Source: Macrostomum lignano
Lineage: Eukaryota
Length of the DNA: 64,000 nucleotides
Assembly (NCBI GenBank): GCA_002269645.1
Contig: NIVC01000019.1
Coordinates: 496,001-560,000, forward strand
Direction: 5' to 3'
Shown here piece after piece: positions 2,940-49,891 of the stretch. The notes beneath the pieces are model-generated. The model was not told the origin of the DNA and ran no database searches. It saw only the letters and a program-made list of their open reading frames with translations. Both the position numbers and the translations under genes were made by a program. Position 1 is the first letter of the stretch. Every line of letters begins with the position of its first letter.

Positions 2940-3955
2940 TTGAGTAGGTTATGTGTCAGAGTCATTGAGTGTGTCATAGAGTCATTGGGTGTATCATTGA
3001 GTTATAGGGTAGGTCATTGGGTATGTTATAGGGTTATTGTGTATGTCATAGAGTCATTGTGTATGCCATAGCGTCATTGTGTATGTCATAGAGTCATTGT
3101 GTATGTCATAGGGTCATTGTGTATGTCATAGGGTCATTGTGTATGTCATAGGGTCATTGTGTATGTCATAGAGTCATTGTGTATGTCATAGGGTCATTGT
3201 GTATGTCATAGGGTCATTGTGTATGTCATAGGGTCATTGTGTATGTCATAGGGTCATTGTGTATGTCATAGAGTCATTGTGTATGTCATAGGGTCATTGT
3301 GTATGTCATAGAGTCATTGTGTATGTCATAGGGTCATTGTGTATGTCATAGGGTCATTGTGTATGTCATAGGGTCATTGTGTATGTCATAGAGTCATTGT
3401 GTATGCCATAGCGTCATTGTGTATGTCATAGAGTCATTGTGTATGTCATAGGGTCATTGTTTATGTCATAGGGTCATTGTTTATGTCATAGGGTCATTGT
3501 GTATGTCATAGGGTCATTGTGTATGTCATAGAGTCATTGTGTATGTCATAGGGTCATTGTGTATGTCATAGGGTCATTGTGTATGTCATAGAGTCATTGT
3601 GTATGTCATAGAGTCATTGTGTATGTCATAGGGTCATTGTGTATGTCATAGGTCATTGTGTATGTCATAGGGTCATTGTGTATGTCATAGAGTCATTGTG
3701 TATGCCATAGCGTCATTGTGTATGTCATAGAGTCATTGTGTATGTCATAGGGTCATTGTGTATGTCATAGGGTCATTGTGTATGTCATAGGGTCATTGTG
3801 TATGTCATAGAGTCATTGTGTATGTCATAGGGTCATTGTGTATGTCATAGGGTCATTGTGTATGTCATAGGGTCATTGTGTATGTCATAGAGTCATTGTG
3901 TATGTCATAGGGTCATTGTGTATGTCATAGGGTCATTGTGTATGTCATAGAGTCA
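2940..3955. repeat. 20-bp minisatellite (GTCATTGTGTATGTCATAGG)n, ~48 copies
   Basis: Direct reading; degenerate at the left end. Confidence 0.95.
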
Positions 3956-4000
3956 AGCAGTCAGCAGGTGAGTGATAGGTTACAGGTGCTTGTTAATGGA

Positions 4001-4996
4001 ATGAATTCGCTTGTCCCCGCAGCCGAAGCCGCCCTCCAAAGCGCCATTTTGATGCTAACGATAGAGGGCCCCAGCAATGCGGAAGCCGCCGCAGTCGGCA
4101 GACGCTCGCAGCAGATGGCTCTGACTACGTCGGCTAAAACTTCGGCAGCAGCGGTCAACACCGGGACAGCTTCCAACACTGCCGACCTCCTTGACCGAAT
4201 GTTGTGCACGCCGCAGCCGCTGCAGCCGCCGCCGCCACCGCCTCCTCGGCCGCCTCCGCCGCCCATGCTCGGCGCTCATCAGCATCAGCAACCTCAGCAG
4301 CCTCAGCAGCAGAATCGCTGGTTGACCTCCACCATCGCGCATGCGACTGTCGGGCCAGCCGACCGCGGCGTCAGCACCCCTGAGGCCGTGTCCAACTCCT
4401 CTAGCGGCGTGTCGCTCAGCCTGCCGCCAGCAGCGGCATCCGTATGCAAGCAGCAGCAGCAGCTGAGCCAGCAGCAGCAGCAGCAGACATCTTTAGAGCG
4501 GGAGTGGTCCAGGCGCATCTCCGCCGGCCTCTGTCCGCACTGCGACGCCCCGGCTGCCACTGACGAGCAGCGCCACTTCCACGAGCGCGTGCACGCCATG
4601 GACGAGCTGTACCGCTGCCAGCTGTGCGCCTGCCGATTTGCCTATCCCTGCTCTCTAAGAATGCACAACAACTTACACGCCAATCGTAGCCTGTTCCTGC
4701 AGCAGCAGCAGCAGCAGCATCGGCAACAGCAGCAACAGCAACAGCAACAGCAACACTATCCAGAGCAGCAGGACCTCGTGCCGCAACAGGCTGCATCTTA
4801 CCAGCAGCAGCAGCAACAGCAGTACGCTGCCGCTGGAGGTAAAATGACTCTTCCAGCCTCTCATCAGCATCATCAGCAGCAGCAGCAGCAGTCGCTAATG
4901 CAGCAGCGCAGTCCTCATGAGTGCCCGCAGTGCGGCCGCGGCTACGTCAGAGCCGGCAACCTGCGCAATCATATGCGCCGCTTTCATCCTTACTAG
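4001..4996 (+). CDS. C2H2 zinc-finger protein with polyQ/polyP tracts (3 fingers)
   Basis: Fingers CPHC..HERVH, YRCQLCACRF..LRMHNNLH and HECPQCGRGY..LRNHMRRFH. First ATG outside the repeat is at 4001; a possible upstream acceptor TACAG at 3981-3985 leaves the true start uncertain. Confidence 0.8.
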   Translation: MNSLVPAAEAALQSAILMLTIEGPSNAEAAAVGRRSQQMALTTSAKTSAAAVNTGTASNTADLLDRMLCTPQPLQPPPPPPPRPPPPPMLGAHQHQQPQQPQQQNRWLTSTIAHATVGPADRGVSTPEAVSNSSSGVSLSLPPAAASVCKQQQQLSQQQQQQTSLEREWSRRISAGLCPHCDAPAATDEQRHFHERVHAMDELYRCQLCACRFAYPCSLRMHNNLHANRSLFLQQQQQQHRQQQQQQQQQQHYPEQQDLVPQQAASYQQQQQQQYAAAGGKMTLPASHQHHQQQQQQSLMQQRSPHECPQCGRGYVRAGNLRNHMRRFHPY

Positions 4997-7851: not shown

Positions 7852-9085
7852 ACCTGTTATACAGTTTACGAGCGAACATTCTCATCATTTTAAAATGATT
7901 TCTGGCTGCCCAGGTACCTATGAAGCCCTTAAATACTTGAATAAAACACAGCTCCCCTGCGCTTGCCTTGGGCATGTTGCGAATGTCTTCTCTGCTACAA
8001 CTCCCATTGCTTTGTTTTTTATTATCAAATGGCGGGCCTACTTTTGTGCCCTTAGTGGTTTTTATTGTAACTAAGATAGTTATTGTACAGAAGAACTGTG
8101 CTTTCGTTGTTAGTTTTGTGTTCTTTTCCTGCTTGCTTGTTTCCCTCTAAAAATATCTTCTTCTCCTGCCCAGTGCGGCAAGTTGTACTCTCTGGTGAAT
8201 AATATTTAAATGGATAAGTACATTATATTATGACTAATTTGGTAATGGCTCATTACTTCTGTTCTCCCTCGATTCACTGCCTGCCTTTCTAGCGGCTCAC
8301 TACTGTTATTACTATTACAGTTATTGTTATTAATAATATATTGAGATGATTAATAGAGAAAACCGAGAAAAAGTGTGAGTGATTCGTGAGTGACCGCATT
8401 CAATATTTTCATTTGGATTTGACTCCAATTTTTTTCATTTTTGCTTATGCTAGTTTGCAATAATATTTTATTAGTGGAAAATCAGCTTAGCGGCAAACGC
8501 ATCTTACTCTCTCCTAGAATCCTAGTTTTCTGAACAAAAAACTTTATAAATATCAATAGAGCTATAAGAAAGGCACAACATATCAAAAGATGAACATTGG
8601 GTCTGCCTCCTATCAAAAGCAATAACAATTTTTGTGCTGAAAAAAATGAAAACTTCCTATCTCCGTAGTGCATTTTTCGGAAAACCTGGCTCCTAAAATT
8701 TTTCCAAGAAACGAGGTTTCCCGTCCTACTTGAGTAGTCCTTGAATCGAATGTGTAGTTGGCTGCACTACTGTTAGTAGAGATTTCGGAGTTTAAATTTC
8801 TATATGAAAAAGATCGACACCATAAAAGCTGTATCCAACAGACTATTGAAATTAGCTTGGTCTGGGAAATCTTAACGCTGCATGCATTCATGCAATAAGC
8901 ATAAAGTCCTGAACGATTTATTGAAAATTAATGTATTATTTATATACTCGTAGGTGTGCAGACGCATGAAAAAGGTATTTACAAGGTGCATCGATTTACC
9001 TGCATGTAGACACAACACAATATAACAAGTTAAGATGTGTACAAGATGCAAGGATTTCAAGCGTGCAGAGACAATATTTAAAATT

Positions 9086-9338
9086 AATTAACAGAGTCCC
9101 AAGTCCGTGAAGAGGCTGTCCGTTTCCGCGGCCAATTAATTCATCCCCGAGCTTCACAATCACACCGCTCCTTCACGGCCGCATTGTAGGATCTATAATT
9201 AAACATTGTATCGAGATCCGGTTGCGGCACCATTGCCGCAAGAGTCCCAACTCTGCAGCTTCCAATGCCGTAACACAGGATTGTTGAAGTTGCGCAGCGC
9301 CACCGGGCTGTTGATGTGCTCTAGCTGCTGCTGCTGCT
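9086..9338 (-). pseudogene. Degenerate intronless paralog of orphan gene A (3' part; 5' part at ~10743-10860, split by LINE)
   Basis: With frameshifts it reads LRQWCRN/PDLDTMFNYRSYNAAVKER.../AAETDSLFTDLGLC*, versus gene A LRRWCREPDLDM..RAYYAAKRER..AAKLDTLFPGSGLC*. Its downstream 8860-9090 is homologous to 11270-11490. Confidence 0.65.
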
Positions 9339-9360
9339 GTTGTTGTTGTTGTTGTTGTTG

Positions 9361-10714
9361 TTAGTTGGCCCAAACGCGCCCAGGATCCATGCAGAACCTG
9401 GCCAGCGCGACCAAACCATCAGGGTAATCGGACAAGTTGCTGAGGGAGAGCGGAGCTCCAATGAAGCGACGGCGGGCGGCCTCGAGAGCAGGGCACGCTG
9501 TCCAGTGCTCAAGGGTGTCTGGTTCGAGGAAGCACCTTTGGCACGTCGGATCCACCGTGGGGTCCATGAGGGCGCGGAAGGCTCCGAAGAGGCTGGAGTG
9601 GCCGGAGCGCAGCCGGGCAAGAAGGACAGCGTCTTTGCGGTTAGTAATAAGCCGACGTTCCTTTTCGGCGTCGGCGGAGGCATAGGTGAGACGAGATCTC
9701 GCGTGGGTGACCGGCTTGTCAACCAGAGTGCGGCGGATCACCGAGGCGGCAGTGGGAAAACTGATGCTGGGGCGCGGTGCTTCATCGGCGTTGGCGGCAG
9801 CGGAGTTAGCAGCGCGGTCCGCGAGTTCATTGCCCGGAATGCCGACATGACCCGGGACCCACAGGAGAGCGCGGCAGTTGTGCGGGAAGCGGAGGGAAGA
9901 GGCCAGGCGGCTGAAGGGACGCTGAAGGGCGCGCAGAAGAGACTGACTGTCAGAGCAGATGATGGCAGGGCGCGTGGGGTGCGAGCGGAGGTAGTCGAGG
10001 GCTAGGACCAGAGCGCGGAGTTCCTCTTCAAAGGAGCTGGTGTAGCGGCTGCCAGCGGACGTGCGGGCTTCCACGGTCGTCGGGACTGCCGGGTCTCCGA
10101 TGGTGACCACAGCGGCCGCCCCGCCAGCCTCGGAGCCGCCGGCCGCCGAACCATCGCAGTAAATGACGAGCTCAGCCGGGTGAGACCGGATGACGTCGAG
10201 AGCGGCAAGACAGCGCTCCAACGGGGGCGTGGTGGCCGGAGGCAAAGGATTGTCAGCTAGGATCGCCGGAAGATGTTGGTCCAGCCAGGGGCATGGGAAG
10301 GCCGGTGTGAGCGGCAGACGCGGCGTGAGATCAATGCCAAGGCCATTGGCAAGCTGAGCCGAGCGGAGTCTCCAGCTACTGCGGGCGAGCCGGTGTTGCA
10401 CGGTGCCCGAGAGGGCGATGGCGCGAGGATGGTCGTTGGGCAGCCTGAGCGCGCGTTCCCTGGCGATGAGGCAAAGGCGGTCGCTGGTGTTCCTGTAGCT
10501 GCCGATGCCGGCCTCCAGGTGCACAGCGTCAAGCGGCGCCGAGCGGTGCAAGCCCGTGACGATTCTGAGGGCCTGGTTTTGCGCGCGCTCAAGGCGCTCG
10601 AAGGAGGTGCTGGAAAGCCAAGGTTGCCAAGCCGGGGCCGCGTAGTTAAGAAGGCTCTGCTGCATAGCCAGGTAGACGCCGCGAAGGCGCTCCTTGCGCC
10701 AACCCCAAGGAGTC
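9361..10714 (-). mobile_element. 5'-truncated non-LTR retrotransposon (I-group-like) with RNase H and C-terminal CCHC
   Basis: ORF 10665-9361 contains the post-RT region (LERAQNQALRIVTG), RNase H (IYCDGS, EEELRAL, SDSQS, WVPGHVGIPGNELAD) and ARLRSGH..CQRC..DTLEHWTAC. The stop is followed by (CAA)n, and both flanks carry duplicated (GCT)n(GTT)n. Confidence 0.9.
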
Positions 10715-10859
10715 GCTGCTGCTGCTGTTGTTGTTGTTGTTGATGACGGCCCCGCTGGGTCACCTGGTCATTGGGCCTACGGGAACGATCTGACTGCAAC
10801 GTGGCACAGCCAGCCGTCAATGTCCCGCTCACCATAGGACAGGGGTCTTGCACCAGTAT

Positions 10860-11119
10860 CAATTCCCCAGTATAGTCAGGTCGATCATGCCAGCGCCCAC
10901 TTGTATAGAATTGCGCAACGCAAGCCCAGACCGGCCGGCAATCCGAGCGTAGGTCCCATCAGGCGGTTGGATTGAAATTCCGAGAGGAACCCGCGCAACC
11001 GACCGGGCCCGGACAACAGCATCTTCAGAGGCGAAGAGATCAAAGCCAACAGAGCCGATCGTCTGGCGAGCCGGCGGGCGAGCACCATCAGTCAGCAGCG
11101 ACACCTTTAAAGCAGCCAT
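10860..11119 (-). pseudogene. DUT: dUTPase copy 1, truncated after motif III
   Basis: [38 protein letters not shown] then a 1-nt deletion (true reading DPDYTGEL). Homology to copy 2 stops abruptly at ~10860. Confidence 0.85.
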
Positions 11120-11485
11120 GATGACGTAGCTGGAATTGGTAAGTTTTTGGGGTTATATTCAGTCGCAGTGTTTACACACACACACACACAGACTGTTTTA
11201 ATAGTTTTTTTCATTCATTCTAAATATCATTACTCGAAAAAATGGTAAAATCTCAACACAATATTCAAATTTTACAAAACAATTTATTTGAAACTAATGC
11301 GCGAGGTGCATGTGGATAACGCATGTGTGCATTCACAACATTTAATGATATAGCGAGTTGAGATATATGGTGTGGGATGCATGAAAATTTAGCTTGAGTG
11401 CAGACACAACACTTGATAAAAACAAGATATGTACAAGGTGCATGAAAATAAAAATGCGTGCAGACACAACATTAAATTGTCAATA

Positions 11486-12125
11486 TTAACAAAGCCCCGA
11501 ACCGGGGAACAAAGTGTCTAATTTCGCGGCTATCTCCTCGTGGAGCTCCGCCTCATACAGTTCTCTCTCCCTTTTCGCGGCATAATAGGCCCTCTCCTCA
11601 GAGGGGTTGCCAAAACAATAGTCAGCTAGCTAGAATAGGGAATGGGTGGGGAAAGTTTTCCGCTATAATGCGTTGAAATTTTGAATCAGCAATTAGTTTT
11701 TAGTTGCAAAATGAAAAGTTTTCGGGTAAAATGCATTCATAGTAAAATCTGCAATTATTTACCATGTCCAAGTCAGGCTCGCGGCACCAACGCCGCAAAA
11801 ACTCTTGGTAGGCGGCCTCTTCATCGTCAGCCGCGGCAGCAGCAGCAACCTTTCCACTAGCAGCGTCACTACTGTGCTGCAGCCCCATCCGAGGGGCTAA
11901 ATTGATGCCCAATCGGCTGCTCTTCTTCTTCATCTTCGGATGTTGTTGCTGCTGCTGCTGCTGCCGATTTAGACTGCTGTCCGACTCTACATTATTTGCG
12001 GCGGCGGAGGCGGCGGTGGCTGCGGCATATTCCCAGGGACTGGCTCCCAACAGCCCACAGCCATTCGTTGCCGCAATAGCTGCCGCCGCACCAACCTAGA
12101 AAGTCGGCATCGGTGTCGTCGTCAA

Positions 12126-12165
<40 letters not shown>

Positions 12166-12420
12166 ACTGTTGCTGTCATTGTTACCACCGTTGTTATCGA
12201 GACCAGAGTCGTGCCTGATGGGTGTTGATGCGTTTAAAACTAGTTGGGCAGTGGAGCGAGGCGGGTTCCGGCCTACTCGACCACCCCCAACCCCGTACCA
12301 CAGGATTGAGGGAGATCGGCCCCCGCGACGCAGCGCCACCGCCGCCGCAACAAACTGAGTCGGCTCTTCTACACTGCTGCTGCCGTTGCCGCTATTCATG
12401 TGTGCTGGTGTGTAGTTGAT
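11486..12420 (-). pseudogene. Orphan gene A copy 1 (exon 1 ~12420..11763 with a frameshift, intron 11762..11630, exon 2 11629..11486)
   Basis: Homologous to 15342-16290. Donor ATG|GTAAAT and acceptor CCCTATTCTAG|CTA are phase 0. Exon 2 is 144 nt and open (LADYCFGNPSEERAYYAAKRERELYEAELHEEIAAKLDTLFPGSGLC*). Exon 1 is split between the ORF-track frames 11992-12423 and 11700-12050. Confidence 0.6.
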
Positions 12421-12439
12421 CACAAATTTTCAATTTGAA

Positions 12440-12530
12440 AAGATTTTCAGTCGCGCTAGGGTCTCGTTTTTATAGTGATTTTGTGAGGCCTCCCATTGGC
12501 TCCGCCAGCCTGCAAGCAAGCAAGCAAGCA
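12440..12530 (-). promoter_or_regulatory. CCAAT box + TATA box promoter of gene A copy 1
   Basis: Minus strand reads GGCGGAGCCAATGGGAGGCC..CACTATAAAAACGAGACCC upstream of the ORF; conserved with 15230-15285. Confidence 0.65.
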
Positions 12531-13262
12531 AGCCAGTCTGTCCGTGCCCAAACCCCCCAACCCCAGGTAGTCTGACTCAACAGCGAGCTATGCCTGTTTT
12601 AATAATAAAATTTCAGATTCTCAAAATTTCAGAGTCTAGGTTATTTCAATTTCAAAAACAAATGAAATAAGACCATTTTTTAATTCCAGAGATGTTATTA
12701 TCAGTGCCGGTTTATTCAATTCAAAAAGATGGTTTTCACTTTCACATTATTAGAGTTTATATAACACAGAAACAAATTCCCACAAGTAAAAATTATACAA
12801 TTGAGAGTTAATCAACATCCTGCACAGAAGAAGCAAAGAATGGCATCAAAACGGCCAGCTGCGGAAGCTGCCATATCAGCATTGTGGGGCGAGCAGGCCC
12901 ATCTCAACACACAAGGCAAACACAAAGTCCCACAAATAAAAATTATACAATTGAGAGTTCATTTTGTCGCGGCCAAATTGACGGCAGACAATATGATGCC
13001 AACAGTTAATACAAGCGTTGCCCTGACTGCGGGTTAAAATGTTACAATCCGCAGTGCTTTAATAATCACCGCCAAAAGAACCGAGCCGGCAGGTCTCGCT
13101 GCAGCTCCATACGCGTCTGCTCCAAATGCGGATATTTGGAGGAGATGAAAGCGGGCCAAAAGGAGCCAGAGCACAGTAGAGTTATTATTATACAAACATA
13201 TATTCCCACAAAAGCATACAACCCACACAAAAGAGTTTTTTTAGAAATTGTCTTAATCATTT

Positions 13263-13862
13263 TCACTCGACACGCATTGTGGGCAGCTGCTGCAGTTTGG
13301 CCTTGTCGCTGCTGTAGATTAGCTTAATTCGCTTGTTCTGCTCCTTGATCACAACGGCCCAGGCAGCAAAGGCCGGCTCGTGGGGCCCAATCTGATGGGC
13401 CGGGGTCTTGAAAAGCTGTTCATCAGTCAGGCCAGCAGCCCAGCTCTCGAGTTCAGTCGAGTCTGGAGGAAACGAGTGCCACCACTTGTAGCTGCTGCTG
13501 CCGTCAGTCCTAGAAAGCTTCTTCACCTGCGGCTGCAGTTCAATCGGTGGCGGGGTGCCAGCACTGCGGCGGCGGCTGCCCTCGCCGTCACCATCGATGC
13601 TGCTGTTGAACCCCGATGATGGCTCCGAAGCCGTCTTGGGCGGCGGCGGCGGCGGCGGCTGCGATGAGGGCGAGCGCTGGAAATACTCCATCAAGTTCAG
13701 CACCAAATTGTGGACTGCTCTGATGGATGCTGACGTTGATTCGCTGTTTGCCTCGCAGTCGAATGCGTCTTTTGCGTCAAATCTGCCTAAAAATCGACAC
13801 TTAAAGGCGCGATACGTAGTGTCCATATGTACATCGTCAGCCTCTATGCATATCCACCACAT
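13263..13862 (-). CDS. Orphan protein B (199 aa, Pro/Ser-rich middle, Trp-rich C-terminal part)
   Basis: Uninterrupted GC-rich ATG-started ORF inside AT-rich spacer. A paralog of its N-terminus (TTYRAFKCRFLGRFDA) exists at ~17725-17800. Confidence 0.55.
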   Translation of the reverse strand: MWWICIEADDVHMDTTYRAFKCRFLGRFDAKDAFDCEANSESTSASIRAVHNLVLNLMEYFQRSPSSQPPPPPPPKTASEPSSGFNSSIDGDGEGSRRRSAGTPPPIELQPQVKKLSRTDGSSSYKWWHSFPPDSTELESWAAGLTDEQLFKTPAHQIGPHEPAFAAWAVVIKEQNKRIKLIYSSDKAKLQQLPTMRVE

Positions 13863-14119
13863 AACCCCAAAATAAAGGATTCATATTGTCGGAGACTGGT
13901 TAGAATATCTAGAATATTCGGAATGACTTGAATTCATACGAGTACAATAGCCTACATGCTTCTAAAAGCGCGGCCTTTTCAGACCCTCAAACTCTCTTTC
14001 TCTCGCCAAACAATGGGGTGGCGGTTGCGTCATCCAAGTCCCTCTGCTCCCCCAAGTTTGCCCTCTGAACAAGACAGGCGCAGGCAAACTTGAAACAATT
14101 AAAACTCTTTCAAGTCACG

Positions 14120-14430
14120 CCTCGCGAATTCGCAAATTACAGCCGCTCCAAAACTATAAGTTAGGCAATACGCCCCTGCCATGATTAAACATCACCACAG
14201 ATTCCCCAAGGGTCGATCAGGCCAGCGCCCACTTGCGCAACGCCAAGCCCGACCTTCCGGGAATAGGAATGGAAGTCCCCTCCGGGGTTTGAATTGAATT
14301 GAAATCCCTGGAGAGACACTTACGCAACCGCGATTGAGCCTGGACATTGGGCAATCACATCCTCCAGCGGGTGAGCGGACACCTTCAATCAGAAGTGAAA
14401 CCTTCAAAGCAGAGAGCTGGAATTGGTGAA
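14120..14430 (-). pseudogene. DUT: dUTPase copy 3, heavily decayed
   Basis: Recognisable [43 protein letters not shown] and ATAGTTTTGGAGCG segments colinear with 16588-16930; several indels. Confidence 0.75.
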
Positions 14431-15229
14431 TTTTTAATAGAAATTTTTAGTGAAATAAATTATATCGCTCCATTTGGGAAATGTTGAGATTAACATAGCA
14501 TGCTTCTATATATGTACTTGTATATGTGCATTAATTAATCCCTATCTAATTTCCTCAATGTGCCTCTATATGTACACTGCATACTTCTATATGTACTTAC
14601 TACGTAATGTGCAGATAACGGTTGATTTTGGAGGTGCGAGGTGATGTCAGAGCCAATGCAAATTCAACGCCTATCTAAATGCATTAGAGCTCTTCTAATT
14701 GGTCCAGACCCTCATTATGATTCATGTAAGTCATTATGTGAGATATGCATGCATGTAACTCAATATGTAAATCTAATTATACATGTAATCAGTGTACCAT
14801 TCTTATTTGTATATTGTGTTGTGTTGATTGTGTTGATTAAGACAATTGCTAAAAAACTCTTTTGTGTGGGCTGTATAATCATTGCTTTTTGTGGGGATTA
14901 TGTGGGCTAGATTCAGCCTTCAGCTTGAGAAATGTACTGACATAATTTCTGAACAGGCCAGTCCGCTGCTGGGAATTTGCGTTTCTGCAATTACATCAAC
15001 TCTAGTAATGTGAATTGAAAACCATCTTTTTGAATAAACTGGCGCTGACAATAACATCTCTGGAATTAAAATGGTCTTATTTCATTTGTTTTGAAATTGA
15101 AAATAACTGAGACTCTGAAATTTTATTATTAAAACAGATAGCTATAGATTGCTGCTGTTGAGTCAGACAGACTAACTCGCTGGCTGGGCTGGGGGGTTTA
15201 AGCAGACTTGCTTGCTTGCTTGCTTGCAG

Positions 15230-15285
15230 ACTGGCGGAGCCAATGGGAGGCCTCTCAGAATCGCTATAAAAACGAGACCCCAGCG
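15230..15285 (+). promoter_or_regulatory. CCAAT box + TATA box promoter of gene A copy 2
   Basis: GGCGGAGCCAATGGGAGG (CCAAT ~15240) and CTATAAAAACG (~15264), ~75 nt before ATG 15342. Confidence 0.65.
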
Positions 15286-15341
15286 CGACTGAAAATTTTT
15301 TCAAATTGAAAATTTGTGATCATCTCCTCCTACGGCGCACA

Positions 15342-16290
15342 ATGAACAGAAGCAGCAACCGCAGCCGTAGCAGTGTAAAAGAAGACGAGCCGCCGCAGTT
15401 AGTTGCGGTGGAGGTAGCACTGCGTTGCGGCAAAACCACCTCAATCCTGTGGTGTGGGGTTGGGGGTGGCCGAGTAGGCTGGAACCCGTCGCTTCGCTCT
15501 ACCGTCCGACCGGTTTTAAGTCTGACGTACAAGTCTGACAACAACGGCAGCATCAGTAGCAGCAGCATCAGCCACAATCGCACCAGCATCAGCAGCAGCA
15601 GCAGAAGCAGCAGCCGCAGCATCAGCAGCTCCAATGGCGACGAATTCGTAGGTTGGTGCGGTGGCTTTTATTGCGGCAACAAGTGTTGCCAGCCCGGCAA
15701 CGGTTGTGAATTAATAGGCGCCAACAATGAAGAATGGGGCGTTGCCACCGCCGCAGCCGAAGAAGCCGCCGCCACCGCAACTGCTGTTGTTGCAGCTGTT
15801 GAGTTGGGAAGCCGCAGCAGCAGCAGCAGCGGCCTGAAGCAGAAGAAGAAGAAGAGCAGCCGATTGGGCATCAATTTAGCCCCTCGGATGGGGCTGCAGC
15901 ACAGTAGTGACGCTGCTAGTGGAAAGGTTGCTGCTGCTGCCGCGGCTGACGATGAAGAGGCCGCCTACCAAGAGTTTTTGCGGCGTTGGTGCCGCGAGCC
16001 TGACTTGGACATGGTAAACAATTGCAGATTTTACTATGAATGCATTTTACCCGAAAACTTTTCATTTTGCAACTAAAAACTAATTGCTGATTCAAAATTT
16101 CAATGCATTATAGCGGAAAACTTTCCCCACCCATTCCCATTTCTAGCTAAAGCTGACTATTGTTTTGGCAACCCCTCTGAGGAGAGGGCCTATTATGCCG
16201 CGAAAAGGGAGAGAGAACTGTATGAGGCGGAGCTCCACGAGGAGATAGCCGCGAAATTAGACACTTTGTTCCCCGGTTCGGGGCTTTGTT
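15342..16290 (+). CDS. Orphan gene A copy 2 (exon 1 15342..16013 intact; exon 2 from 16147 apparently frameshifted; unspliced ORF ends 16076)
   Basis: Ser/Ala-rich ORF with KKKKKSSR basic stretch and C-terminal LRRWCREPDLDM. Donor GTAAAC at 16014. Acceptor TTCTAG at 16146 is followed by a 2-nt insertion relative to copy 1. Confidence 0.55.
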
Positions 16291-16587
16291 AATACTGACA
16301 ATTTAATGTTGTGTCTGCACGCATTTTTATTTTCATGCATCCCACACCATATATCTCAACTCGCTATATCATTAAATGTTGTGAATGCACACATGCGTTA
16401 TCCACATGCACCTCGCGCATTAGTTTCAAATAAATTGTTTTGTAAAATTTGAATATTGTGTTGAGATTTTACCTTTTTTTCGAGTAATGATATTTAGAAT
16501 GAATGAAAAAAAACTACAAAACATTCTGTGTGTAAACACTACGACTGATTATAACCGCAAACTCACAATTTCAGCTACATCATCATC

Positions 16588-17050
16588 ATGGCTGCTTTAA
16601 AGGTGTCGCTGCTGACTGATGGTGCTCGCCCGCCGGCTCGTCAGACGATCGGCTCTGTTGGCTTTGATCTCTTTGCCTCTGAAGATGCTGTTGTCCGGGC
16701 CGGGTGATCGGTTGCGCGGGTTCCTCTCGGAATTTCAATCCAACCGCCTGATGGGACCTACGCTCGGATTGCCGGCCGGTCTGGGCTGGCGTTGCGCAAG
16801 TCTATACAAGTGGGCGCTGGCGTGATCGACCTGACTGTACTGGAGAATTGACTGTGGTGATATTTAATCATGACAGTGCGGACTGGTTCATAACTCGCGG
16901 CTACCGTATCGCTCAATTAGTTTTGGAGCGTGTATTGATTGCTCCCGTAGTTTAAGGGATCTCTATAGCGGGGATGGCGAAGAGGAGGTTGCTTCCAGCA
17001 GCCACTCAATTCGCGCTGCTGGGGGGTTTGGGAGTACAGGCTATAATTAG
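16588..17050 (+). pseudogene. DUT: dUTPase copy 2, full length but disabled
   Basis: All five motifs are visible (GFDL, RSGLA, GVID(P)DC, RIAQLV, RAAGGFGSTG). In-frame TGA at 16705, 1-nt deletion at ~16831 and a further frameshift near 16950. Confidence 0.88.
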
Positions 17051-17724
17051 GCCTCAACTTGTTGTTGTCCCCTTGCTGTTTTGCTCTCTGTTTCAACTAT
17101 AGAAATGAAAATATGCACGATCTCCGCTTTTCCAATGTGAAACTATATGAATAGTCTTTTTCAGTAGAATCTTGACTCGTAACTCTACTAAAGGTAGTAA
17201 ATAGTGTAATCAACTACATGTAGGTTTTGGTAATTGAACATATAAATGGAAATGTGCATATATAACGTGTTTTGTAAAACTTCGGGGTTAGTTGACTCAT
17301 TTGGTAGTAGATGCGATTGTGCAACCGCTGGTGCGCACGCACTGACCCATCTCTGCACGTACAGCTGTACACGTAGCAATTAGTGTTTCGAGTTGGAATT
17401 GTACATACACTCTTGTGGGGTTGGCGATTCAAATACGCAGAGCTGAGGCCGTCGTGTAGATTGGGGATTAATGTAGACACTGTACATATAGAACTTGTCA
17501 TAGAAGTAGATTAATGCGCAAGTGTACATATAGAAGTATGCACTGTACAAGTAGACAATGTACATATAGAATTTTGGGTAGGTAGGGATTAATTTACAAA
17601 TGTGAGTACATGAGATTAATGTACATATACGAGTAAATATTATAGTATGCTATGTATATCATGCTTAGGATAGCGTTTTCATATACAACTTACTTCATTT
17701 TTCAGATAGTAGTATAATTTGCGT

Positions 17725-17800
17725 TTGTTGCGTCAAATCTGCCTAAAAACCCGGCAGTTTCTGCGCGTTACGTAGTTAGATGTACTTCGATCTAGTGAAA
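17725..17800 (-). pseudogene. Fragmentary paralog of orphan B
   Basis: TTGCGTCAAATCTGCCTAAAAA is shared with ~13770-13795. It translates TT*RAETAGFLGRFDA versus TTYRAFKCRFLGRFDA. Confidence 0.55.
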
Positions 17801-17977
17801 GGCCTTCCAAGGATTTTGGCGTTGTGAAATTTCAACCCTAAGAAGCGACCCCTTGTCAGCCTCTTGGCTTTAAACAGTTGAGTATACAGTGGACTTTATG
17901 GTCGGGAGACAAAGCCAAGAATTCAACATGTACATGTACATGACTAAATTCCTACATGTCCATTATTTTGAACTGCT

Positions 17978-18495
17978 CATTTTGGCAGTGCAGGCACTCA
18001 TTTTGGCGCCGCAGGCACTCATTTTGGCGCCGCAGGCACTCATTTTGGCGCCGCAGGCACTCATTTTGGCGCCGCAGGCACTCATTTTGGCGCCGCAGGC
18101 ACTCATTTTGGCGCCGCAGGCACTCATGTTGGCGCCGCAGGCACTCATTTTGGCACCGAAGGCACTCATTTTGGCGCCGCAGGCACTCATTTGCCACTGC
18201 AGGCACTCATTTTGGCGCCGCAGGCACTCATTTGCCACTGCAGGCACTCATTTTGGCGCCGCAGGCACTCATTTGCCACTGCAGGCACTCATTTGCCACT
18301 GCAGGCACTCATTTTGGCGCCGAAGGACCTCATTTTGGCGCCGAAGGAACTCATTTTGGCGCCGAAGGCACTCATTTTGGCGCCGAAGGCACTCATTTTG
18401 GCGCCGAAAGAACTCATTTTGGCGCCGAAAGAACTCAGTTTGGCGCCGAAGGAACTCAGTTTGGCGCCGAAGGAACTCATTTTGGCACCGAAGGC
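17978..18495. repeat. 21-bp minisatellite (GCAGGCACTCATTTTGGCGCC)n with 18-bp variant units
   Basis: Direct reading. Confidence 0.92.
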
Positions 18496-18622
18496 ACTAT
18501 ATGAGATATTTTGCGCCCTGAAGAAAAACTATTGATTACCACAACGGGTCAGAAGGTGGGGTGGGGGGGGGACAAAGCAGTGGCATACCCCCCCTAGCTT
18601 TTACTGGGGGGGATGTCCATCC

Positions 18623-19679
18623 GGGAAGCTAGATTAAGCGCGCCAGGAACAAGCGCGCATTTTCACACGTATTTTACATGGTTCGGAATAAGCGCGCAGG
18701 AGAACGGACCAAAACCTGAATAAGCGCGCAGTTAACTTTCCACAGACCGGAATAAGCGCGCAGTATTTTTGATTGATACAGGAAAAAGCGCGCACGAGTT
18801 TTCCCATGACTTGGAACAAGCGCGCCAAAATTTTACCCGCTTTTGGAATGAGCGCGCAGCTGCTTTTGTACTGACGGGATTAAGCGCGCAAATGATGATT
18901 TTAACTGACTGACTGCAGGGGCCTGAAATTTTCAAAGGGCCTTTAGGCTCAATATCTGACTGACTGGCCACAGCTGGCTCTCGCGGCTTCTGATTGGCTG
19001 CAGGGGAGAGGGGTGAAATGTACAGTGCCCAGCGCATGGAGCGTGCAAATCAGGTTGTGGGCCTGATTTGACTTACACTTTTAATTACACTTTCAATTGC
19101 GGCGTTTAAAAGCCGATTACACTGCGATCAAATTATTCAGATTTACTTCTAGCTATGGAGTGCATAGAAGGAAACCGTCGCGGTTCAAAGCTTTTGTAAA
19201 GGACGAATTCGTCTATCGAAAAGACAGTGGCAGAGAAAGAAGAAAAGTCGGTTTCCGCTGCTGCGACAAACACTGCTCTGGTCGCCTACTGCAGCATCAA
19301 GACGGTAGCCTGAGTGTGACATCAGTCCACAATCACGAAGCAGAGGGACAGCGTCTGGAGCTTCTGCACTTAAAGAGTAGACTTAAAAGAAGAGCCGAAG
19401 ATTCGAGTGCCACTCTTCGAGACATTTTTGATGTAATCTTAATCTTAATCTTAGTTCTGTTGAAAATCTGTGCGCGCTTATTCCAGGACTTTTAAAAACG
19501 TTGCGCGCTCTTTCCTGTATCGAGGAATATGGATGCGCGCTTATTACAGTATTTTGATATATCGCAGCGCGCTTATTCCAACAACTTTCCGTGCGCGCTT
19601 GTTCCCTGCGCACTTATTCCGACGTGTGCAAAGAAATACACGTGCGCGCTTATTCCTGGCGCGCTTAATCAGCCCTCCC
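18623..19679 (+). mobile_element. Non-autonomous Mutator-like (MULE) element with FLYWCH fragment
   Basis: TIRs GGGA..GATTAAGCGCGCCAGGAA at both ends, built from repeated AAGCGCGC motifs. 8-bp TSD GTCCATCC at 18615-18622 and 19680-19687. Internal FVYRKD..FRCCDKHCSGRL..HNH resembles FLYWCH. Confidence 0.85.
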
Positions 19680-20167
19680 GTCCATCCTGTCCCCCTGGTG
19701 GCGACGCGCCTGTGAATGCAATGTGAGTATAAATAAGTGTCACCACCTTCAAACGGCAGCAAAAGCAAATGCTAAGTTCCCAAAACATTTGTGAAAGAGA
19801 TTTGTGAAAAACAGTGCGCGAAAAAACTCTTGTGCTCTCATTTCGATACGCTTACTTTTACAATATATTATTTCGACGACATAATATGCTTTATAGGTCT
19901 GTCAACCAAACATTGGAATAAGTATAGTTAGCTAACTTATAAGCTATGCACAGGTAATAAGAGAAGTAACGAAAAGGTTTTTTTCAAAGCAGCTATGCAC
20001 AACAACCAAGTGCTATTATGTTATAGTACCTACATGTATACTTTTCACTTAGTCATGCTGCCTTGACGTGCTCAGGTTAATTGAGCATTGTGCCTTGAAC
20101 CCCATTGAACGACAACGGTGCAAACTGGCAATTTTGCACTGTTTGCAAAATCTTATGTCTATTGCTG

Positions 20168-20884
20168 CTACTGCTGCTCCGAGCAGAGTTCCACTCTCTG
20201 CTGCCGCAACAAGGCCAACATCAGGCTGCCTATATCAATGCTGCAGCTTCGGCGATGTCCGCAGCGCAACGACGCATTGGAGAATTTCGAGCAGCTGGTG
20301 ACTTCTTTATCGCGCTGCCTAGACATATTCTTGAGCTGGTGTAGACTGTCGCTGCCAACCAGTTTGCTGTGGTTGAACATGTTCTTGGAATTGTGTAACA
20401 GCTCTCTTCCAACCGATTTCGAGTTCAACTGTCTAGACGTCTTAGATTTGTTTAGTTGCTCAACTGGTCTCGACTGATTGGAAATTTTTCTAGACCTGTG
20501 TAACCGCTCCGTGCCAACTACTAGTTTGCTGAGATTGGAAACATTCTTGGACTTTTGAAGCTGCTCGACACCGATTGGCTTTGACTTGTTGGACCAATTA
20601 ATAGACTCCTGCAGCGGATCGCGACCGATCAGCTTGGAGCCGCTGTATCGGCGGGTGCGCGACGGTTGGAAATTCGGCTGCGACGCTGGCGGCATGGTGA
20701 TGCGTCGGGACGTCGACTGACGACGAGACGCGGACGTCTTGTAGACGGCTAACAGCACCAAGCCGATGACCAGTATAGTCAGCAAGGTTAGCGACACCGA
20801 CAGGGCAATGATAGCCCCGTTGCTAATGGTGCTCATGGCCTCGTTATTCTGGACGCGAGCTCTGCGGACTGGATGGTTCAACAT
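20168..20884 (-). CDS. Unknown single-pass membrane protein with six ~18-aa cytoplasmic repeats (possibly a terminal exon)
   Basis: 238-codon ORF; hydrophobic GAIIALSVSLTLLTILVIGLVLLAVY followed by basic residues, then SKxxG..L..SKN repeats. Confidence 0.6.
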   Translation of the reverse strand: MLNHPVRRARVQNNEAMSTISNGAIIALSVSLTLLTILVIGLVLLAVYKTSASRRQSTSRRITMPPASQPNFQPSRTRRYSGSKLIGRDPLQESINWSNKSKPIGVEQLQKSKNVSNLSKLVVGTERLHRSRKISNQSRPVEQLNKSKTSRQLNSKSVGRELLHNSKNMFNHSKLVGSDSLHQLKNMSRQRDKEVTSCSKFSNASLRCGHRRSCSIDIGSLMLALLRQQRVELCSEQQ

Positions 20885-34889: not shown

Positions 34890-36671
34890 ATGGCGGCAGC
34901 GGCAGCCCCCAGCGGCTACGAATCGGTCCTGTGCGTGAAGCCGGACGTTAAAGTCTACCGGCTGCCGCCCCGACAGTCCAACCGGGCCGTCCGCGCCGCT
35001 GACTGGCAGCTGGAATCGCCGGACTGGTGCGGCCGGCTCCGCATTGTGGTGGTGGACAAGCGGCTCTGGCTGCGTCTTGAAGACAAGACCAGCGGCGACC
35101 TGTTCGCCAGGTGCCCGGTTGACGCCTTCCCCGGCGTGGCCATCGAGCCCGTGGCCGATTCCAGCCGCTATTTCGTCATCCGGGTGCAGGACGACAGCGG
35201 CCGGGCCGCCTTTATCGGCATCGGATTCGACGACAGAGGCGACGCGTTCGATTTCAACGTGGCCGTGCAGGATCACTTCAAGGGGCTTAAGCAGGAGGCG
35301 GAGGCTGAGCAGGTGAGAATTATCTTCTTTGCTTTCGCCATCTTTAGTCTAGCTCTTCCGTCTGTCTCAATCTCAGCCTCGCTCTCAATCTCAGCCTCAA
35401 ACTCTCAATCTCACCCTCTCACTCTTAATCTTACCCTCTCACTCTTAATCTTACCCTCTCACTCTTAATGTCAGTCTCTCACTCTCAATCTCACCCTCTT
35501 AATCTGTATCTCACCCTCTCACTCTTAATCTCAGTCTCTCACTCAATCCCAGCCTCTCACTCTCAATCTCAGTCTTTCACTCTTAATCTCAGTCTCTCAC
35601 TCTTAATCTCAGTCTCTCATTCAATCCCAGCCTCTCACTCTTAATGTCAGTCTCTCACTCTCAATCTCAGTCTCTCACTCTCAATCTCACCCTCTTAATC
35701 TGTATCTCACCCTCTCACTCTTAATCTCAGTCTCTCCCTCAATCCCAGCCTCTCACTCTCAATTTCAGTCTCTCACTCTCAATCTCACCCTCTTAATCTC
35801 AATCTCACCCTCTTAATCTGTATCTCACCCTCTCACTCTTAATCTCAGTCTCTCACTCTCAATCTCACCCTCTTAATCTTGATCTCACCCCCTCGCTCTC
35901 GTTCTCAGCCTCTCACTCTCAAACCCACCCTCTTAATCTTGATCTCATTCTCAGTCTCAATCTCACCCCTCACTCTCAATCTCACCCCTCACTCTCAATG
36001 TCTGTCTCTCACTCTCAATCTCACCCTCTTAATCTGTATCTCACCCTCTCACTCTTAATCTCAGTCTGTCACTCTCAAACTCACCCTCTTAATCTTGATC
36101 TCATTCTCACTCTCAATCTCACCCCTCACTCTCAATCTCACCCCTCACTCTCAATGTCAGTCTCTCACTCTCAATCTCACCCTCTTAATCTGTATCTCAC
36201 CCCTCACTCTCAATCTCACCCTATCACTATTGCTCTAACCCCCTAAATCTTAATCTCACCCTCTCACACTCCACTGTCGATCTCATATTCCATTCTCTGT
36301 ATCTAACAAACCCATTAATCTCATCTCATCGGTGGATATTCTAATCTCAACCATTCTTCTATCCTTCATGAATATTCACCCAGGCCGCCAAAGAGATGGC
36401 CGAAGGTCCCAAGCTGGATCTCAGCCTGAAGGAGGGCCAGACGTTTCGCATCGCCATCAACACCGGCCGGGGCGGCGGCGAGTCGGGCAGCGGCGGCTCC
36501 CGCTCCCGGCCAAAGCCGGCCGGAGGCGGTGCTGGCGGCATTTTGCTGCCCCCGCCGCCGGCCCCTGGATCCAGGCACGGCCAGGTGAAACCGTCGACCA
36601 ATTCCGACCAGGTTGGACTGGCTAAACAGCAGGGCGGCGGCGGCGGTCTCGGGTGGGACACATTCCAGTAG
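34890..36671 (+). CDS. NECAP: Adaptin ear-binding coat-associated protein; exons 34890..35312, 36384..36671
   Basis: PHear/DUF1681 domain [55 protein letters not shown], then [17 protein letters not shown] and terminal GWDTFQ. Phase-0 GT/AG at 35313/36383. Confidence 0.93.
35375..36270. repeat. TC-rich compound minisatellite (CTCTCACTCTCAATCTCACC-type), NECAP intron
   Basis: Direct reading. Confidence 0.9.
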
Positions 36672-38143: not shown

Positions 38144-46148
<8,005 letters not shown>

Positions 46149-48601: not shown

Positions 48602-49075
48602 TCCCTAACCTAACCCTGCCCTAACCCTACCCGAACCCTTACCCTAATCTTAACCTATCCCTACCCTAACTCTGCTTTAATCTCAACCTAATCCTACCCT
48701 TATCTCAACCTAACCCTACCCTAACTCTACCCTAACCTACCCTACCCTAACCAAAACCTAATCCTACCCTAATTCTACCCTAACCTCAATCTAACCCTAC
48801 TCTAACTCTACTCTAAACCTCAATCCAACCCTACCCTAACTCTTACCCTAACCTCAAAATAACCCTTACCCTAAATCTACCATAACCCCAACCTAACCCT
48901 ACCCTAACCCCAACCTAACCCTATACCCTAACCCCAACCTAACCCTACCCTAACCCCAACCTAACCCTATACCCTAACCCCAACCTAACCCTATACCCTA
49001 ACCCCAACCTAACCCTACCCTAACCCCAACCTAACCCTAACCCTAACCCTAACCCTAACCCTAACCCTAACCCTG
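48602..49075. repeat. Interstitial telomere-like (CCCTAA)n and variants, block 1
   Basis: Degenerate CCCTAA/CCTAA units grading to ~7 perfect CCCTAA copies near 49030-49074. Confidence 0.85.
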
Positions 49076-49737: not shown

Positions 49738-49891
49738 AACCCTACCCTAACCCCAACCTAACCCTATACCCTAACCCCAACCTAACCCTATACCCTAACC
49801 CCAACCTAACCCTACCCTAACCCCAACCTAACCCTATACCCTAACCCCAACCTAACCCTACCCTAACCCCAACCTAACCCTACCCTAACCT
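49738..49891. repeat. Interstitial telomere-like variant repeat, block 2
   Basis: Same CCCTAACCCCAACCTAACCCTA(TA)C higher-order unit as 48890-49030. Confidence 0.85.

Follow-up and report, generated by a model that had tools for sequence, protein, structure and literature searches.

The window analysed here is a 64,000-nucleotide stretch of the Macrostomum lignano genome (assembly GCA_002269645.1, contig NIVC01000019.1, positions 496,001 to 560,000), and all positions below refer to it. Between about 9 and 17 kb, the window contains several copies of a compact, intronless unit in which an open reading frame (ORF) without detectable relatives, denoted ORF A, is followed by a spacer and a dUTPase-like sequence; a second orphan frame, ORF B, accompanies one of the copies. 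An initial annotation, made from the nucleotide sequence alone, described this region as an amplified cassette of orphan genes and compact dUTPase genes that could be cargo of a mobile element, an endogenized segment of a DNA virus, or a fast-evolving array of host genes. Here we describe the copies of the unit, the state of the genes they contain, and the probable history of the array.

The two largest copies form an inverted duplication. The plus arm, which carries the most complete unit, spans 14970-16859 (+) and the minus arm spans 10851-12782 (-), as delimited by blastn, a repeat finder and alignment of the arms to each other. The arms point outward, with a 2.2-kb spacer between them; BLAST aligns the pair with an E-value of 0, and individual blocks are 95-99% complementary. 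The inverted duplication seen in the initial annotation is real, and the arm coordinates proposed there agree with ours to within about 25 nucleotides (nt). The homology between the arms stops at 10851 and 16859, within the footprint of the dUTPase, and on the plus side only, the footprint runs about 190 nt past the arm, to position 17050. A boundary inside the dUTPase footprint argues for a segmental duplication rather than for paired transposon ends: a terminal repeat would not stop in the middle of a cargo gene on one side and run through on the other, so the arms are not the termini of an element.

Overall, the identity between the aligned arms is a mosaic, ranging from 51 to 100%. It reaches 99-100% over positions 15841-16530 of the plus arm, 94-96% across the dUTPase and 93% in a promoter-like block, is about 81% immediately 5' of the dUTPase start codon, and drops to just 51-74% across the N-terminal half of A (some 500 nt). 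There are also indels specific to one arm, one of them 61 nt long. This pattern suggests an older duplication that was partly re-homogenized by gene conversion.

In addition to the two arms (U1, plus; U2, minus), the locus harbors a remnant in the spacer associated with ORF B (U3, 14060-14412) and a fragment to the left of the minus arm (U4, 8984-9245), that is, at least four copies of the unit of different ages at one locus. No further copy of the cassette was found by BLAST elsewhere within the 64-kb window. U4 is a decayed, partial copy of about 260 nt in minus orientation that was recovered by local alignment against the plus arm: a stretch resembling the C-terminus of A (9217-9245) is followed by a segment (9190-8984) colinear with plus-arm positions 16189-16413 and identical to it at 139 of 199 positions. 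The local score of this match is 84, compared to 33 +/- 5 for shuffled sequences (maximum 55). A dUTPase remnant was sought downstream of U4 and was not detected.

A paralog of A had previously been placed at 9086-10860; the decayed unit at about 8984-9245 accounts for the valid part of this claim, and most of the remaining interval is the 3' part of a 5'-truncated non-LTR (long terminal repeat) retrotransposon at 9361-10714 (-). This fragment contains a 434-codon ORF (9361-10665) with an RNase H domain (RNase_H, PF00075, E = 1.1e-11; RVT_3 at 0.005), and direct reading of the translation reveals a motif resembling the thumb of reverse transcriptase (RT), LLNYAAPAW, and a C-terminal C-x2-C...H...C motif. 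The RT core is missing, consistent with 5' truncation. By its sequence features, namely, the end of the RT region, RNase H and the C-terminal Cys/His motif, the segment qualifies as a non-LTR retrotransposon. A (CAA)n(CAG)n run of repeat family D3 was read at its 5' junction (10715-10743, -), and the same repeat at its 3' junction (9324-9360), where the stop codon of the fragment abuts the repeat without a 3' untranslated region (UTR). A target duplication, a repeat-type 3' tail and microhomology are all candidate explanations for the presence of the repeat on both sides.

The dUTPase-like sequences and their relatives

The dUTPase domain was detected on ORF 10859-11119 (-) of the minus arm by Pfam (PF00692, E = 2.3e-15, 57 bits against a cut-off of 22) and PHROG (dUTPase, 3.7e-13), and the same ORF matches 54 PDB dUTPases at E < 1e-3. 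With a second copy in the plus arm and a third remnant in the spacer, the original identification of this protein family holds. The state of the genes is a different matter. Each copy was aligned, with frameshifts allowed, to eight intact database dUTPases. The plus-arm copy (16588-17050, +) is a pseudogene with a full-length footprint that opens with its own start codon, closes with its own stop codon just past the C-terminal GGFGSTG-type motif, and is about 50% identical to the intact enzymes over reference residues 7-155 of 161; it contains two frameshifts and one or two in-frame stops, so that the footprint is spread over three frames. The minus-arm copy (10851-11119, -), to which the PF00692 match belongs, retains an open N-terminal part of 86 codons, has one frameshift, and breaks off after about 60% of the enzyme, precisely where the homology between the arms ends. 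The exit from the starting frame is identical in the two arms, and this common lesion indicates that the dUTPase was already defective when the arms last underwent copying or homogenization. The third remnant (about 14060-14412, -) is older, with 66% DNA identity to the plus-arm copy; it has accumulated 11 indel runs, 9 of which are not multiples of three, contains stops in all three frames, and is no longer detected by Pfam.

None of the three copies retains a single uninterrupted frame with all the motifs through the C-terminal glycine-rich one. Of the three dUTPases described initially, none is intact, owing to frameshifts, stops and truncation; judged by their sequences, all three are pseudogenes, and the cluster now encodes no active dUTPase. 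What does stand is the description of the ancestral gene as lacking introns and an N-terminal extension: the footprint is colinear with intact enzymes and has no intron-sized gaps. A TATA-like box lies upstream of the dUTPase ATG, and there is no leader resembling a 5' UTR. Downstream of the stop at 17050 there is no A-rich or poly(A) tract, and the repeat finder reported no direct repeat flanking the dUTPase, although an old retrocopy could have lost such marks. Fusion of A and dUTPase into one gene with an N-terminal extension was also considered and rejected: the extensions of database matches of 313-360 residues are unrelated to A, and one of these matches is a gene-caller fusion with a WD40 neighbor.

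The original enzyme appears to have been a minimal, stand-alone, eukaryote-type dUTPase of the trimeric type, with about 154 codons. Its relatives are remote. Word-indexed searches of 5.8 billion protein sequences returned one weak match for the dUTPase fragment, at 45% identity. HMMER comparison of the 86-residue fragment to 1.84 billion cluster representatives gave 5240 matches, none with a per-domain identity above about 55%; the top scorers are plant fusions with two or three dUTPase domains, for which the scores add up. The best single-domain relative, P0017, is about 59% identical over 91 residues and is encoded on a compact contig between a gene with a faint Pox_A22-like match and a family B DNA polymerase; this contig probably belongs to a nucleocytoplasmic large DNA virus (NCLDV). 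Two other close matches, P0152 and P0036, are located on dense, orphan-rich contigs, whereas genes of a fungus and of microbial eukaryotes (protists) are as close as P0017. The best relatives, at 50-59% identity, thus come equally from giant-virus-like contigs, fungi and protists.

Other searches gave a similar picture. For both segments of the dUTPase used as they stand, the PDB ranking places algal and plant, chlorovirus and yeast enzymes at or above that of fly, followed by shrimp and then by Wsv112 of white spot syndrome virus (WSSV) and the human enzyme, with small gaps between the scores (algal, plant and fungal, 57-63 bits; chlorovirus, 59.2; fly, 58.1; shrimp, 49; human, 46; Wsv112, 46). 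A profile scan of IMG/VR retrieved 421 viral dUTPases with identities of at most 55%; a scan of metagenomes yielded identities of 47% or less, and a single-sequence scan of viral contigs with the dUTPase detected no relatives. When the window and the cassette were compared by tblastx and tblastn to 96 fetched loci, nothing was shared beyond the dUTPase. No domain of a transposase, integrase, polymerase, capsid protein, ATPase or virus hallmark protein was detected in the ORFs or in six-frame Pfam scans, which covered the spacer (12700-15000) and the right flank (18500-20100) and gave no match to any other domain either.

Among the known dUTPases, the stand-alone enzymes of NCLDV (chlorovirus structures 3c2t, 3c3i and 3ca9, and contigs of giant virus metagenome-assembled genomes in IMG/VR) resemble the ancestral gene in size, about 140-160 residues, and in the lack of an N-terminal extension. 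The similarity to them, however, is no higher than that to other groups (59 bits for chlorovirus, 44-55% identity for the IMG/VR contigs), there is no specific clustering, and the M. lignano sequences have no neighbors in common with these viruses, no hallmark genes nearby and no intact copy. A virus-derived dUTPase in an invertebrate genome has a precedent in the wsv112-like gene of an endogenous nimavirus (Nimav-1_LVa g140, 462 amino acids), and proteins of the wsv112 type, of about 460 amino acids, are found among dozens of nimaviral core genes (PMC7016691). By comparison, the sequence described here had about 154 codons, scores 46 bits against Wsv112, below the fly, yeast and plant enzymes, and has no nimaviral neighbors; a nimavirus origin was dropped because of the low Wsv112 score and the different size and context.

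In the bdelloid elements Juno, Vesta and TelKA, and in basidiomycete elements, the dUTPase is part of pol and lies between protease and reverse transcriptase (PMC5408684). Unlike these and retroviral dUTPases, the one at this locus has its own start and stop and no adjacent protease, reverse transcriptase or integrase. The repeat finder reported no LTRs or long direct repeats flanking the unit, and the sole adjoining retroelement is the unrelated non-LTR fragment, 130 nt away. The housekeeping DUT enzymes of animals (fly 3ecy, shrimp 7dlv, human 2hqu) share the fold family and the order of motifs (PF00692) with the sequences at this locus, but the latter lack an N-terminal extension and introns and are broken, and the shrimp and human enzymes score below those of algae, plants and fungi. 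The initial impression that the locus does not represent the housekeeping DUT gene was right.

ORF A, ORF B and the promoter-like block

In the plus arm, ORF A is an open reading frame of 256 codons (15306-16076, +) that is continued in frame, past one stop, for another 71 codons (16077-16289, +). The minus-arm copy (11489-12423, -) is split over two frames and is not an intact ORF, so an intact orphan gene A is present in one arm and not, as had been supposed, in both; the same stop precedes the continuation in both arms. An internal tandem duplication of about 60 nt, in which 'AATGCATTTTACCCGAAAACTTT...' is repeated as 'AATGCATTATAGCGGAAAACTTT...', was observed at 16040-16130 (+), and likewise in the minus arm; this duplication straddles the stop codon of A, which may have arrived with it. 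Between the stop codon of A and the start codon of the dUTPase lie 511 nt (plus arm) or 580 nt (minus arm). The spacer of about 300-370 nt given in the initial annotation is recovered, at about 298 nt, only if the continuation of A to 16289 is counted. The continuation overlaps the segment that is kept in U4.

In the N-terminal half of A, the two arms differ almost equally often at each of the three codon positions (48/53/54), and four of the nine indels are out of frame. This pattern points to neutral divergence but, given the uncertain alignment of this low-complexity region, can be taken as indicative only. Toward the 3' end of A, the arms agree at 98-100% of positions. Upstream of A, the plus arm contains a candidate CCAAT box and a TATAAAA box (15240-15271, +), with the equivalent in the minus arm at about 12467-12498 (-). 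The CCAAT and TATA arrangement is present as previously described and falls within a block of the inverted repeat (I6) that is 94% complementary between the arms (93 of 100 positions in the arm alignment).

ORF B (199 codons, 13263-13862, -) lies in the spacer, separated by about 200 nt from the third dUTPase remnant upstream of it, and has no homolog, domain or confident fold. A paralog of B proposed at about 17750 turned out to be a scrap of 58 nt (17720-17776, -), in the same orientation as B and 81% identical to 13764-13820. Neither A nor B matched a Pfam or PHROG domain or had a homolog among the 5.8 billion proteins, and there was no exact match among 15 billion proteins. No relative of A, its continuation or B was found in single-sequence scans of viral contigs, and the continuation of A (16077-16289) has no relatives either. 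AlphaFold predictions from single sequences reached a mean pLDDT (predicted local distance difference test) of 38 for each of the two proteins, with no confident fold. We consider that A, with at least 327 codons originally, and perhaps also B, was probably once a real gene that has now decayed; the lengths of both ORFs, which exceed those in shuffled sequences, and the open frame beyond the stop of A are consistent with former coding.

Origin and history of the unit

The reading that best accounts for these observations, and that we regard as likely, is that the locus is a decayed, locally duplicated relic array of a compact intronless unit, with no working system and no mobile element. In the original unit, ORF A (at least 327 codons) would have been followed by a spacer of about 300 nt, a dUTPase with about 154 codons and, some 200 nt further on, probably ORF B. 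The dUTPase reading frame would have been lost first, followed by repeated local segmental duplication of the unit, which would have produced at least four copies (U1-U4). The most recent copying would have been the inverted duplication, with one breakpoint within the dUTPase, and later gene conversion between the arms would have left near-identical blocks next to strongly diverged ones. Finally, the non-LTR fragment would have been inserted in a CAA/CAG repeat beside the oldest copy. We regard this as the most likely order of events.

Clusters of duplicated pseudogenes that arise by local segmental or inverted duplication and gene conversion offer the closest description, with copies of different ages at one locus. 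The resemblance extends to breakpoints inside genes, a common disabling lesion and mosaic inverted arms, but here there is no identifiable parent gene; the relatives of the dUTPase are at most about 59% identical, and those of A and B are lacking. Candidate origins of the unit include a donor that was a large DNA virus or a microbial eukaryote, an old retrocopy, and a lineage-specific paralog; a foreign donor, viral or microbial, is possible, as suggested by weak similarity rankings and by the compact layout of the genes.

Several observations weigh against the interpretation of the locus as a relic array. A and B both exceed the length expected from composition-matched shuffles (p ~0.002 for A and ~0.015 for B), and the promoter-like block of A is 93-94% conserved between the arms, whereas its flanks are not; the ORF lengths and the conserved block leave room for A or B to have a function today, whether as a protein or as an RNA. 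The neutral pattern in A is blurred by its low-complexity alignment, and a structure predicted with low confidence from a single sequence says little about the absence of a fold. Gene conversion, in turn, is deduced from the mosaic, and the confinement of the unit to one locus was assessed within the 64-kb window.

Among the alternatives, the one that survives best is that the unit is all that remains of an endogenized large DNA virus or another foreign donor, with the dUTPase as an accessory gene and A and B as viral ORFans. This alternative concerns origin alone and is compatible with the history of decay and duplication. Several features point in this direction: the dUTPase is a minimal stand-alone gene that has start and stop codons of its own and lacks introns and an N-terminal extension; P0017 comes from a contig that bears PolB, and P0152 and P0036 from dense, orphan-rich contigs; the as-is segments match fungal, algal, plant and chlorovirus dUTPases at least as well as those of fly, shrimp and human, although the host genes in the window are clearly of the animal type; and the genes of the unit are tightly packed, co-oriented and intronless, whereas nearby host genes have kilobase-sized introns filled with repeats. 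Against this, identity to viral dUTPases is at most 55-59%, equal to that for fungi and protists; no hallmark domain is found nearby in any frame, and nothing else is shared with the 96 loci; scans of viral contigs brought up no relative of A, its continuation or B; and the base composition of the cassette is ordinary, not differing notably from that of the window. Moreover, at 58.1 bits for fly and 59.2 for chlorovirus, the 'non-animal' signal is weak. On balance, a viral or foreign remnant appears unlikely, if worth considering. The fuller scenario, in which A, dUTPase and B are the only surviving trace of such a donor, with A and B as its ORFans, and were then amplified locally, is to be given slightly less credence. 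Of the endogenized DNA virus segment initially envisaged, then, the minimal stand-alone dUTPase and the occurrence of P0017 on an NCLDV-like contig are in agreement, whereas the ceiling of about 59% identity and the lack of other matches in the 96 loci are not.

The dUTPase could instead be an old processed pseudogene of host DUT mRNA that was later duplicated, with A and B as unrelated flanking sequences. The dUTPase is indeed intronless and broken, non-LTR retrotransposons, which provide the machinery for retrocopying, are present in the window, and the score of the fly dUTPase is close to those of the best solved structures. However, no poly(A) follows the footprint, nothing resembles a 5' UTR leader, a TATA-like box precedes the ATG, and the closest protein is only 45% identical in the word search of 5.8 billion sequences or about 55-59% identical with HMMER. 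With only two or three disabling lesions and yet no close relative, the sequence is unlikely to be a recent retrocopy of an ordinary animal DUT. Furthermore, A is found linked in no fewer than three copies of the unit, which indicates that A was part of the unit before copying. We therefore consider a retrocopy improbable.

Still less probable is that A, B or both are living, fast-evolving, lineage-specific genes, encoding proteins or long non-coding RNAs, with the dUTPases as passengers. The unexpected lengths of the ORFs and the conserved CCAAT/TATA block are what such genes would show, as is the 98-100% identity of the 3' part of A between the arms, but the minus-arm A is frame-broken, both arms share the stop before the 71-codon continuation, the divergence shows no bias with respect to codon position, and neither homologs nor a confident fold were found. 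In a variant of this scenario, a read-through hairpin RNA would feed a small-RNA pathway. The inverted pair could, in principle, yield double-stranded RNA if transcribed through, but the predicted promoters face outward, which would lead to two sense transcripts rather than to a hairpin. As a working array of fast-evolving host genes, the third of the possibilities raised initially, the locus fails on several counts, with all dUTPases broken, A broken in one arm, and apparently neutral divergence.

The two remaining alternatives can hardly be sustained. A 6-kb DNA transposon, or an element of the Maverick or foldback kind, with terminal inverted repeats of 1.9 kb and dUTPase as cargo, would explain the long inverted arms around a 2.2-kb center and the repeated units nearby, but the edge of the arms cuts the dUTPase footprint, which continues past it on one side only, no frame yields a domain of a transposase, integrase, protein-primed polymerase, capsid protein or ATPase, the identity of the arms drops to 51%, and there is no second copy in the window; the proposal of mobile-element cargo is abandoned on account of the position of the boundary and the missing domains. 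Inverted duplicates are a known artefact of long-read data, but an assembly artefact such as a fold-back chimera is just as hard to credit, because fold-backs would give near-identical arms, whereas these differ by many substitutions and arm-specific indels, with identity of 51-74% over 500 nt, and one arm is truncated and abuts a different sequence.

Taken as a relic array, the locus calls for certain precautions in annotation: the three dUTPase matches are to be labeled as pseudogenes and the 434-codon ORF as a retrotransposon fragment, and the inverted repeat is not to be mistaken for a mobile element. The initial annotation was largely right about the geometry of the locus and wrong about its vitality. 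If the unit were of foreign origin, it would preserve, as a small fossil, a passage of genes from a virus or microbe to an animal, and the two linked ORFans could help identify the donor; even then, it would be a dead relic that opens no long-standing question.

Neighboring features of the window

The exons of two genes identify the window as animal DNA, to judge by the encoded proteins. One is a NECAP-type exon (34890-35330, +; 206 bits against mammalian NECAP1), with the PHear domain contained in this single exon, and is directly followed by about 0.9 kb of a 20-nt minisatellite. The other gene, at about 38.1-44.0 kb, encodes a cytoplasmic methionyl-tRNA synthetase (MetRS) and is represented by exons at 38144-38731, 40415-40921 and 43353-43952 (+; 240 bits against human MetRS). 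It has a GST-like N-terminal part and large exons, and tandem repeats fill its introns; one of them, (ACAG)n, takes up about 1.4 kb at 41841-43270. The load of micro- and minisatellites is very high across the 64-kb window. Interstitial telomere-like arrays of (CCCTAA)n and its variants (periods of 11 and 22-24 nt) occupy 48603-49074 and 49738-49890.

To the right, the cassette adjoins a 21-nt minisatellite of about 25 copies (17976-18498) that is open in several frames and gives rise to spurious ORFs of 180-210 codons. Further on, a pair of inverted repeats of about 200 nt that are 69% identical (18632-18834 and 19463-19670) encloses a 132-codon ORF (19097-19495, +), the 3' end of which overlaps the right-hand repeat. 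Although Pfam gave no match to this ORF at E < 0.01, a FLYWCH-like Cys/His pattern, CCDKHCSGR...VHNHE, can be discerned by eye, and the repeat pair with its ORF may be a scrap of a transposon. A 238-codon ORF (20168-20884, -) has a hydrophobic segment at the N-terminus and some five internal repeats resembling SKN.SN.SKLVG, with sub-threshold Pfam matches only.

An Rfam scan over 7-21 kb yielded nothing, and none of ten ORFs of the window was matched in an exact look-up among 15 billion proteins; a scan for bacterial promoters and terminators is irrelevant to eukaryotic DNA. Near the right end of the window, two adjacent ORFs at 59157-61407 (-) represent a pol fragment of a BEL/Pao-type LTR retrotransposon, with a Pao peptidase A17 domain (E = 1.1e-41) and an integrase zinc-binding domain. 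On the far left, a 352-codon ORF (3938-4996, +) with runs of glutamine and a C-terminal C2H2 zinc finger (PF00096, 1.1e-05) is probably an exon of a host gene.

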